A stretch of DNA of 64,000 nt, taken from positions 26,660,001-26,724,000 of the forward strand of contig NW_027266267.1 in the NCBI RefSeq assembly GCF_022045235.1, in the 5' to 3' direction. The stretch's first letter is position 1. Every line of letters starts with the position of its first letter. The notes beneath the pieces are model-generated. The model did not search any database. It saw only the letters and a program-made list of their open reading frames with translations, and was not told where the DNA came from. This document shows positions 5,757 through 29,288 of this stretch, one piece after another. This stretch comes from Haliotis cracherodii. Lineage: Eukaryota. The translations under genes were made by a program, and so were the position numbers.

Positions 5757-8700
5757 CTGGAAATAAGTTTGGGAAATATCAAAACGGTCACCATTGGGGT
5801 GGTTTTCGATGGCATTTTCATCACCGCAAAAGCATTGGGATAGCTATCAATATAATTGCGATGAACTTTAAAACTTTTGAGTGAGTGAGCGAGTGAGTGA
5901 GTGAGTGAGTGAGTTGGGTTTAACACCGTTTTGAACAGTATTCCAGTTATATCACGGCATGTCAGCTTAATGTGGGAGGAAAGCCTGAAGTGATGCAGGT
6001 CTCTGACATTTAACACTTTTGTTAAACCCACGAGCACGGGTATGGTGCTGAGAAACCAAGAAGCATAATCAGGGCAAGTGTTGTCTTGAACCAACAATCA
6101 CTGTGTTTTGCCCAAGGGACACAACTCTGTGCAGCAAACTGCTAGAACTTTCGATAGTATTATGATATGAAGCCGGGAACAAGATTCAGAAGATTGTGTG
6201 GTAATGTGTTTAGGAAGTGAGGTGAAATGGGGTTTAACATTAAGATTATTGCACTTCAGTAGCAACGTGGGTAGCACTGCTTGTAATAATGCTAGTTTTA
6301 TAGTGGTAGGCCACTGAGATACCATGCTGCAGTTTAACATGAATACCCCACATAGACAGTACACTGACTCCAAACGACCAGTCCTTGTTTTAGCCCCTTA
6401 ATGCTGAGCGCCAGGCAAGGCAACATCTTTTAACATCTCTTGGTATGAAGTGGAGATCAAACCACCGACATTCTGCTCTCCACTCTATCCACTAGACCAC
6501 AAAGGCGGTCAGTTTAGGAAGTAAGGGAAGTTGACCACTTAGTTCCTTATGTCATCAATGTATTGCCACCAGGCCATGGACACCTGATCTATCGATATAT
6601 CTCCATCAAACAGTGTGTCATATAGTGGCTTGAGACCATTATAATGTGCCCTTGTCGTATCTAGATGTCAGCTCTTTCTGTAACTAGGTCTCATAAGTGT
6701 GAGTGTTGCAGCAAATGGTACAGCAATATGCTGGCATGTAAGAAATTAAAACATCCTGTTAAATAAACTGATCTGGTGGGCTCTGAAATACATATCAAAC
6801 ACACGAGTATGCATTCACTGTGCAACAATCGTCACACCCTTCAGTGTAGTCTCCTTCTAACCCTGGTTGGCTGTGAGATTGTGGAACTGACCTTGAACTT
6901 CATACTGCTGAGTTTGTAGAGGATGTCGTTCATCTGGTCTCGGATGATGGCCCAGGTGATTTTGTTCTCGCTCTGTGCCGTGCTCTCCACAGCATGCCGG
7001 GCCAGGTCGTAGAATGCGATGATGTTCTTCAACATGCCCACCGTCTTGTAGAAGGGGCAGAACCTGGGAAACAGTGAGTGAGTGAGTGAGTGAGTGAGTA
7101 TGGGTTTATGCTGCTTTTAGCAACATTCAAGCAACATTCAAGCAATATTCAAGCAATATCCGAGCAACATTCAAGCAATATTACGCCCGGGGACACCAGA
7201 AATGGGCAACACAGCATACCCATGTGAGGCATCGAACTCATGTCTTCAGCGTGATGAGCGAACAATTAGTTGTTGACACATAATTATACAGAAATCAAAG
7301 TGGAGAAGGAATTCTCTGGACCTGCTCAGAAGCCTTCATTCTGAAGCCTGAAGCAATTGTCAGTAAAAACTCCCAAATGATGTTATCATAGTAATAACTA
7401 TAAATGTTATGGCTATACAGAGATGACTTGCATGTCACTGACAACAAGAAGAGGCTTTAAGTTAAGTTTTACATTTTTGCATTGAATGAGGTATTAAAAT
7501 ACTTCTGAATAAAAAAAATAAGGATAATAATTTAAGAAAATAAAGTCCTAATTTTGAACAAAAGTATGTTATATTTTGCATTTTGTCTGCCAAGGGCACA
7601 TAGTTTTGAATCTGATATAAATCCCTCTTGAGCAATAGAACTATGCTGCCTGAGAATTCCGGAGGACACCACTGAGGTTGACCACACACAACAAAATGTC
7701 TGAGGCGTTAAGCCATTCTGCCCTGGTATCCCCACTGAGGGTGTGTCCACCCACCTGTCATACGGAGTGTAGCCGTTCTGCTGCAGGTAATCATCCTTGA
7801 TGAGTTTGGCAACCTCAAGGAGGATCTTGTCTGGTTCTGCCAGAGAGCCCTGTGTACAATGGAGAGAGTGAGTGAGTGAGTGTGTTGGGTTTAACAACGC
7901 TTGTAAGTTGTAACAGTCTTCCAGTTATATCACGGCGTGTCAGCTTAATGTGGGAGGAAAGCCTGAAGTGATGCACGTCTTAGACATTTACCACTTTGGT
8001 GAAACCCACGAGCACGGGTATGGTGCTGACAAACCTAGAAACATAATCGGGGCGAACCAGGATTCGAACCCACAATCATAGGTTTCTGGCGAGCCCAAGG
8101 GACGCAACTTTGCACAGCGAATCACAGCGCATTAGACGACTGGGCCACCCGTGTCCCCAAAAGGAGAGAGAGAAAGTGAGATCAACGCTTTGAACAGTAG
8201 TTCAGTAACATCACAGTGTGTCAGCTTGTGATACAGGTCTTTCCTTGTTGGTGAAACCTATGGGCACAAGTGCTGGCAAACCTCCAAGCACAGAGTGAAC
8301 AGGGATTTGAACCCATGATCAGTGTTGTCTGACAAAGCTAAGGGATGCAACTCTGCACAGCAAATTGCAGCTTCTTTGAGCCAACGGTCAGCAACAGGTC
8401 AATCAGCTTGACTTCTGTGACAAGCAATGATAAAGATGCGTCTGTTCAAAAATGTTTGTTTGTTTGTTGTTTAGCGCCACACTCATCAATATTACAGGTA
8501 TATGATGGCAGTCTGTATATATTCAAATCTGGACCAGCCAACATGGCCAATCCAGTGGTGGATATCATGAGCATCGATCCACGCAATTGGGATACAATGA
8601 CAAGCAGAACCCAAGTCAGCAAGTCTGACCATCCGATCCCGTTAGTCGCCTCTTACAACAACCATAATGGGTTTGCATTACGGCAAGCATGGGTTGCTGA

Positions 8701-29288: not shown

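Follow-up and report, generated by a model that had tools for sequence, protein, structure and literature searches.

The 64,000-nucleotide (nt) stretch of the Haliotis cracherodii genome analysed here (contig NW_027266267.1, positions 26,660,001 to 26,724,000; hereafter the window) contains two oppositely oriented genes, ATP6V1A (V-type ATPase catalytic subunit A) on the minus strand and NAA50 on the plus strand, in which five exons have the (ACTC)n tail of a sense-oriented short interspersed element (SINE) just before their acceptors. The genes were identified exon by exon. The NCBIfam model TIGR01042 (V-ATPase A) was matched by 12 of the 14 ATP6V1A coding-exon frames, which together cover contiguous profile positions 10-573 (10-56, 54-85, 79-126, 124-171, 169-222, 218-279, 273-313, 310-392, 386-462, 454-484, 481-514 and 508-573); the first and last coding exons had no NCBIfam match in this search of the 14 frames. 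The exons that follow the five tails are:

6892-7063, minus strand: ATP6V1A exon 14; acceptor AG 7064-7065; TIGR01042 positions 508-573; transcript contigs begin the exon at 7061-7065
7755-7849, minus strand: ATP6V1A exon 13; acceptor AG 7850-7851; TIGR01042 positions 481-514; placed by transcript contig numbering
13171-13292, minus strand: ATP6V1A exon 5; acceptor AG 13293-13294; TIGR01042 positions 79-126; placed by reading frame and splice consensus
27522-27650, plus strand: NAA50 exon 3; acceptor AG 27520-27521; matches solved NAA50 chains (E 2.9e-20, residues 50-90) and Pfam Acetyltransf_1
29087-29288, plus strand: NAA50 exon 5, the last coding exon, with the stop codon; acceptor AG 29085-29086; placed by reading frame, with weak GNAT-family Pfam matches

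Four sequencing runs (X1, X5, X16 and X21) were mapped on positions 6880-12879 as assembled contigs. X1, X5 and X16, from three organisms, behave as RNA, and X21 consists of genomic contigs. The transcript contigs (X1 record 1, X5 record 13, X16 records 4 and 6) hold the predicted exons 6-11 of ATP6V1A (12466-12606, 11873-12023, 11186-11348, 10537-10647, 9524-9759 and 9159-9366) in adjoining record positions, followed by 155 nt that correspond to exon 12 (60 nt) and exon 13 (95 nt), and then by exon 14, the start of which varies by 2 nt owing to GT/AG repeats at the junction. Because these contigs join exons 12 and 13 to exon 14 at the predicted sites, the acceptors of exons 13 and 14, directly behind two SINE tails, are those in use in X1, X5 and X16. 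The acceptors of ATP6V1A exon 5 and of NAA50 exons 3 and 5 were placed solely by reading frame and splice consensus.

The presence of five (ACTC)n tails shortly before these acceptors is confirmed, and each of the copies has the orientation of its host gene. The SINE sequences concerned, with the older copies on which two of them are stacked, are:

7073-7263, minus strand: family A SINE truncated at the 5' end, its 3' module repeated internally; tail 7073-7099, 7 nt before the ATP6V1A exon 14 AG
7862-8156, minus strand: full-length family B SINE, 85-88% identical to the B reference; tail 7866-7882, 14 nt before the exon 13 AG
8157-8372, minus strand: older, decayed family B copy behind the younger one; 76.7% identical to B positions 33-281, with a score of 129 where shuffled sequence reached at most 49
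13301-13522, minus strand: SINE 3'-end fragment; 9-nt tail 13306-13314, 11 nt before the exon 5 AG; upstream, an 87-nt array with 2.2 copies of SINE 3' parts
26701-27518, plus strand: family B SINE interrupted at about 26760-27290 by a nested element; tail 27500-27511, 8 nt before the NAA50 exon 3 AG
28660-28839, plus strand: family A copy
28840-29070, plus strand: 5'-truncated family B copy directly following the A copy; tail 29059-29070, 14 nt before the NAA50 exon 5 AG

At exon 13 the older B copy's decayed tail holds the target duplication of the younger one, and before NAA50 exon 5 the truncated B copy directly adjoins the tail of the A copy. The split B copy before NAA50 exon 3 is 85.9% identical to B positions 46-277 in its 3' part and aligns weakly in its 5' part, with a score (33) that the best of 200 shuffles also reached; its 13-nt target duplication (26701-26713 and 27506-27518), found by reading, is identical at 12 of 13 positions and begins with TCACTC. 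The element nested within it, of about 530 nt with inverted ends of about 9 nt, is probably a small DNA transposon. One X21 contig, from a relative diverged by about 3-4%, spans positions 7162-7449 including the body of the exon 14 SINE (the tail stretch, 7066-7107, was masked in mapping), and this copy is therefore older than the split from that relative.

The original prediction, made from the sequence of the window, thus holds for the positions of the five tails (gaps of 7-14 nt), for the stacked B copies and for the NAA50 exon 3 duplication. Its ratio of five introns in 18 holds for the five, the total of 18 presupposing one 5' untranslated region intron of ATP6V1A. The roughly 19.7 kb of intron hold 11 sense tail sites, a density at which chance would place 0.10 of them 5-14 nt before one of 18 acceptors; five are found there (p 3e-8, calculated post hoc and on the same total of 18).

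Three SINE families with a common 3' module were separated by BLAST with copies taken from the window. Family A, of about 165 nt with an (ACTC)n tail, has a head that matches the Rfam tRNA family RF00005 at 25363-25434 (31 bits, gathering score 29, E 0.0013), in which ARAGORN found no tRNA gene, as is expected of a derived head. Family A is a tRNA-derived SINE: short, non-coding, dispersed and flanked by target-site duplications of 11-19 nt. Family B, of about 290 nt, also ends in an (ACTC)n tail; its head has no Rfam match at E values up to 1, and a GGTTCGAATCC-like box is visible in it by reading only. Family C has an (ACAA)n-type tail. The window contains 28 (ACTC)n runs of at least 9 nt (12 on one strand and 16 on the other), and 190 kb of other gene loci contain 56 copies of families A and B. 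Two copies of the window that end farther from acceptors serve for comparison:

25358-25521, plus strand: full family A SINE with tRNA-type head; tail ends 76 nt before the NAA50 exon 2 acceptor; 12-nt target duplication starting in tail register
5878-6138, minus strand: family B SINE of the last intron of ATP6V1A; 119 nt separate the end of its tail from the final acceptor (AG 5757-5758)

The positions of SINE 3' ends relative to acceptors were also determined in a sample of other conserved genes of the same assembly (CCT, AAA, proteasome, DEAD, tRNA-synthetase, myosin, kinesin and kinase), the exons of which were found by Pfam searches of the whole genome and the upstream DNA read. Loci of about 3 kb were taken for 30 of the 50 CCT hits and for all AAA and proteasome hits, 80 of these 91 having readable upstream sequence; 170 further short windows were taken at hits starting at profile position 10 or beyond, with a short open frame also required for myosin, kinesin and kinase hits and the last batch being free of stops. 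A tandem myosin cluster and a tandem DEAD array were excluded. The large tandem cluster of myosin-head genes lies at C12:64.59-65.96 Mb, and the tandem array of about 25 DEAD-like copies, riddled with stops, at C12:46.06-46.20 Mb. A heuristic acceptor caller, used without RNA support, placed an AG in 234 of the 250 windows, a sense tail being any run of at least 8 nt.

A sense tail ends no more than 15 nt from the AG at six of the 234 acceptors (2.6%). The distances to the nearest tail were 0 (12 by eye), 6, 8, 10, 11, 12, 18, 28, 37, 40, 50, 71, 77, 77, 84, 90 and 99 nt, and decayed tails near the AG add two to four cases (among them L123 at 7 nt and L214 at 14 nt). The sense-tail density of the 190 kb of gene loci (0.23-0.25 per kb) predicts 0.7-0.9 such cases (p 7e-5 to 3e-4) and that of the window itself (0.5 per kb) predicts 1.9 (p 0.013), so that tail density near acceptors is about three to seven times that elsewhere, depending on the reference. 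By BLAST, four of the 80 exon hits have a sense SINE 3' end at most 20 nt away, compared with 0.85 expected (p 0.011), and no SINE 5' end lies within 20 nt on the donor side of any of the 80. At 28%, tails near acceptors are about tenfold more frequent in the window than in the independent sample, and five in 18 has a p of 8e-5 at a rate of 2.6% and of 1.5e-3 at a rate of 5%. The tail-at-acceptor pattern is therefore recurrent in the genome with a moderate excess, and the window is an extreme instance of it. The enrichment of SINE 3' ends within 15 nt of acceptors has a size and a p value (7e-5 to 0.05) that hinge on the reference chosen. Tail-bearing units also occur in tandem within introns at C34:68223182-68228335 and C45:33352432-33358589 (four tails at intervals of about 100 nt; two with a spacing of about 210 nt), recalling the 87-nt array before ATP6V1A exon 5.

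Target duplications were compared in 17 full-length copies with a score of at least 8. Their median length is 13 nt, and 11 of the 17 start 2-6 nt inside the tail register, where 1 in 16 would do so by chance (p 5e-10). The tail pairs with the nicked target before reverse transcription, that is, by target-primed reverse transcription with tail-target microhomology, and new copies therefore land in older tails, as at ATP6V1A exon 13 and NAA50 exon 5. At 218 SINE-free acceptors, the 4-mers of the tail register are flat from -70 to -5 (0.016-0.019 per site, the background being 0.019), as are YTCAY 5-mers (0.006-0.009), and YTRAY shows a weak rise only, at -25 to -21; the T-rich (pyrimidine) tract of these acceptors is short, from -15 to -3, which fits gaps of 6-14 nt. 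The insertion points, 6-14 nt before the AG, fall in this pyrimidine tract and not at the usual branch distance or at branch-like motifs, and because tail-like and YTCAY motifs are flat at SINE-free acceptors, branch-like targets do not explain their position. The idea that the tail primes on branch-point-like targets is thus supported as far as priming by the tail is concerned and is not supported as to the nature of the target. Around the nick, a hand count gave 72% pyrimidine at -1 and 83% at +1, a composition roughly estimated to favour pyrimidine tracts by only about 1.7-fold.

Other candidate regularities of the target were rejected. Targeting of sequence resembling a 3' splice site was suggested by several flanks, but only three of 15 defined duplications end in AG (by reading); a Y-rich stretch with YAG 9-20 nt after the tails occurs at about the chance rate (13 of about 45, counted by eye); and an enrichment of tail-like motifs at intron 3' ends is refuted by their flat frequency. 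Two near-acceptor duplications, at C3:21506137 and C80:19416391, extend as far as the AG or enter the exon by 2 nt. In the first of these loci (C3:21501921-21507819), the CCT-exon acceptor and the 13-nt duplicate resemble an internal stretch of the family C SINE just upstream, and this acceptor may itself be SINE-derived.

The SINEs lie almost exclusively in sense orientation. The 190 kb of other gene loci (L001-L071) have 55 sense copies of families A and B to one antisense and 46 of family C to three (in total 101:4, p 2e-25), and the interval 5600-29300 of the window, with its two opposed genes, has 19 to two. One full antisense A/B copy was found inside ATP6V1A by BLAST and tail runs:

11623-11791, plus strand: the sole full antisense A/B copy inside ATP6V1A

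Antisense tails of families A and B would read as arrays of GTGAGT, the donor consensus, and antisense family C as a CAG preceded by a T-rich tract. The simplest explanation of the sense bias is selection against antisense splice signals of this kind; an integration preference is the alternative.

In all five introns, A residues of the tail lie at -12 to -36, a branch site being expected about 15-40 nt before the acceptor, in CTCAC units that fit the branch consensus yUnAy, in agreement with the original prediction. Branch sites are as a rule close to the acceptor. Since an insertion 6-14 nt before the AG displaces the old branch site, the branch site of these introns should by this logic lie in SINE sequence, and it is plausible that the tail takes over as branch site.

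The pattern could best be explained as follows. Old, fixed, sense copies of two SINE families, A with a tRNA-type head and B with another head, sharing the 3' module and the (ACTC)n tail, would have been inserted by target-primed reverse transcription, for which the short T-rich tract before the acceptor would have been nicked and the RNA tail have paired there with 2-6 matching bases. The pyrimidine tract, AG and exon downstream of the nick would remain joined and the acceptor itself therefore be untouched, while the old branch site would be displaced by 150-800 nt. The tail, a run of ACUCAC (yUnAy) units now at -12 to -36, would become the branch site, so that the insertion would be close to splice-neutral. 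Copies in antisense would introduce into the pre-mRNA the GTGAGT arrays of families A and B or the T-rich tract and CAG of family C, and such copies are almost absent from genes. Taken as a whole, the explanation by copies primed into the T-rich tract with the tail as replacement branch site is moderately probable. It builds on the anatomy of the copies, the use of two of the five acceptors, the recurrence of the pattern, the tail-target microhomology and the orientation bias, all of which are established, and it would have the tail function in branching and selection give rise to the orientation bias. The excess at acceptors may be due to a nicking preference for pyrimidine steps, to longer survival of copies beside exons, or to both.

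Several points weigh against this explanation. The duplications are 55% Y and 35% T (hand count), from which a rough estimate gives a pull to pyrimidine tracts of about 1.7-fold and not of 3-7-fold. Relative to the neighbouring 16-90 nt, the excess is about 2.8-fold (17.5% of the space holds six of the 16 tails, p 0.047), and at least two of the six sample cases are ambiguous, their acceptors being heuristic (the kinesin hit at C7:34699115 has a gap of 10 or about 22 nt, and that at C7:2938965 was called at 0 and reads as 12). Family C, with its different tail, also ends near acceptors, so that tolerance there is not restricted to the ACTC tail. The branch function might belong to a distant site or to one in the SINE 3' module instead of the tail. 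Finally, the greater age of the near-acceptor copies is as compatible with survival as with targeting. Family C copies were observed to end 10-60 nt before conserved-exon acceptors at C1:77721950, C2:42878365, L235, L170, L117 and L101.

Among the other explanations, the one by survival and not targeting holds that SINEs land at random and that copies abutting acceptors cannot be lost once splicing depends on them, so that old copies accumulate there as others turn over. Identity of the 3' module to consensus has a median of 76.7% in near-acceptor copies (n=9) and 88.3% elsewhere (n=38, alignable at 60% or more; p 0.03), and young copies (at least 88%) make up one of nine near acceptors compared with 22 of 38 elsewhere (p 0.006); five of the nine near-acceptor copies come from the preselected window, however, and the age difference reverses when items below 60% identity are included. 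The age of the exon 14 copy, which predates the split from the X21 relative, agrees with survival, and in the passages considered here a 2024 paper on bivalve SINEs proposes a survival bias for older SINEs in genes (PMC11481361). Against it, SINE 5' ends have no matching accumulation at donors (0 of 80, compared with 4 of 80 for 3' ends at acceptors), and most old A/B copies far from exons likewise retain tails of at least 8 nt, a count blurred by family C matches to the shared module. Because these distant copies are still tailed, detection bias, in the form of perfect tails being kept only near acceptors, is not the main cause of the pattern and was rejected. As a replacement for targeting, survival is unlikely; as the cause of part of the excess, longer survival beside exons is a live explanation.

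A more far-reaching possibility combines strand-specific homing, coupled to transcription or splicing, into the last 15 nt of introns with evolution of the tail into a portable, splice-safe branch site. This combination is likewise unlikely. If it were true, SINE tails would provide the branch site for thousands of abalone introns, or about 2-4% of acceptors, the inverse of the mammalian rule that bars transposons from this zone.

Homing of the (ACTC)n tail to branch-point-like TCAC or CTCAC at intron 3' ends, as the cause of the excess, could draw on the 11 duplications that begin in tail register, on the TCACTC at the start of the NAA50 exon 3 duplication and on the younger copies that sit in older tails. 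It is decidedly doubtful: neither tail-register 4-mers nor YTCAY 5-mers are commoner at -5 to -40 of the 218 SINE-free acceptors than elsewhere, the insertions fall in the pyrimidine tract 6-14 nt before the AG with the weak YTRAY rise at -25 to -21, and a microhomology of 2-6 nt is too short to single out a site.

That there is no real excess, SINEs being dense and tolerated throughout introns and the window being the tail of a random distribution, is very unlikely. The independent rate of 2.6%, ten times below that of the window, the p of only 0.047 against the adjacent 16-90 nt and the heuristic acceptor calls speak for it, but six cases were seen where 0.7-1.9 were expected (p 7e-5 to 0.013), the count rises with the degenerate tails (L123 and L214) and with family C, and five in 18 would have a p of 8e-5 at the rate of the genome sample. 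Strand-specific integration tied to transcription or splicing, with the first nick on the template strand near polymerase paused at 3' splice sites, would suit the sense orientation (about 96%) of all three families with their two different tails and the restriction of the excess to the acceptor side, but has little probability, as selection against antisense splice signals accounts for the bias without it and the near-acceptor copies are mostly old.

Three other repeats were noted in the window. A 25-nt repeat (10 copies, 95% matches) at 15988-16240 adjoins the acceptor of the ATG-bearing ATP6V1A exon on the intron side; a minisatellite-like repeat at 10243-10530, in an ATP6V1A intron, has a long minus-strand open frame and one short run of GAGT, not part of a SINE tail; and a G-rich 33-nt satellite at 36710-46612 has about 301 copies (80% matches) and a strong GC skew.

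In mammals the 20-40 nt before the acceptor are the part of the intron least tolerant of insertions. A study of hazardous zones (PLoS Comput Biol 2011, PMC3088655) asked a similar question about SINE position and orientation relative to splice sites; in the passages considered here it describes SINEs in human and mouse as depleted within about 100 bp of exons, with elements within 20 bp biased to donors, and attributes the orientation bias to cryptic acceptors of antisense Alu being selected against. The sense SINE 3' ends of the present genome differ in being not depleted but probably enriched within 15 nt of acceptors, with a sense bias of about 96%. Here a SINE family has repeatedly been placed before the acceptors of housekeeping genes that still splice correctly.

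Dog narcolepsy reportedly involves a SINE insertion next to an acceptor of HCRTR2. In dog FAM161A, according to PMC3976383, a SINE insertion beside an acceptor causes disease with exon skipping. The dog insertions resemble those described here in that a SINE separates the acceptor of a conserved exon from its branch site. They differ in outcome, exon skipping in the dog and normal splicing here, plausibly because the abalone tail looks like a branch site.

SINEs paired with long interspersed elements (LINEs) of the UnaL2/UnaSINE1 type make target duplications, with tail-target pairing at the nick. The passages of PMC4758252 in which such pairs are cited give them the same combination of shared 3' module and short tandem-repeat tail and describe no link with splice sites. 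Mollusc SINE families (MESC, LP and others in PMC4758252; bivalve HCD SINEs in PMC11481361) are enriched in genes and carry tandem-repeat tails and heads of tRNA or other type, as far as the main-text passages of these papers go. Abalone SINE families are among those described there, and none in these passages is (ACTC)n-tailed; the words 'intron' and 'orientation' do not occur in the main text of PMC4758252, nor 'splice' in that of PMC11481361. A literature search, with subscription journals and supplements outside its scope, found no report of SINE tails lying regularly in branch-point zones and none of a sense bias of about 96% in molluscs. The pattern would be of practical use for mollusc gene annotation, in which SINE tails next to AGs could be mistaken for errors.

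In the exonization of antisense Alu, a SINE supplies splice signals (pyrimidine tract and AG) that give rise to new, mostly alternative exons. If the abalone tail acts as branch site, a few percent of the introns of this animal would need transposon sequence for the first step of splicing, and a mobile element would have been shaped, by its tail and its orientation, to spare the splicing of its host. Unlike the antisense Alu, the SINEs described here are sense copies that serve old, constitutive exons. Splice signals derived from transposons are already known, and SINE tails that lie recurrently at the branch-point zone may be another form of them.

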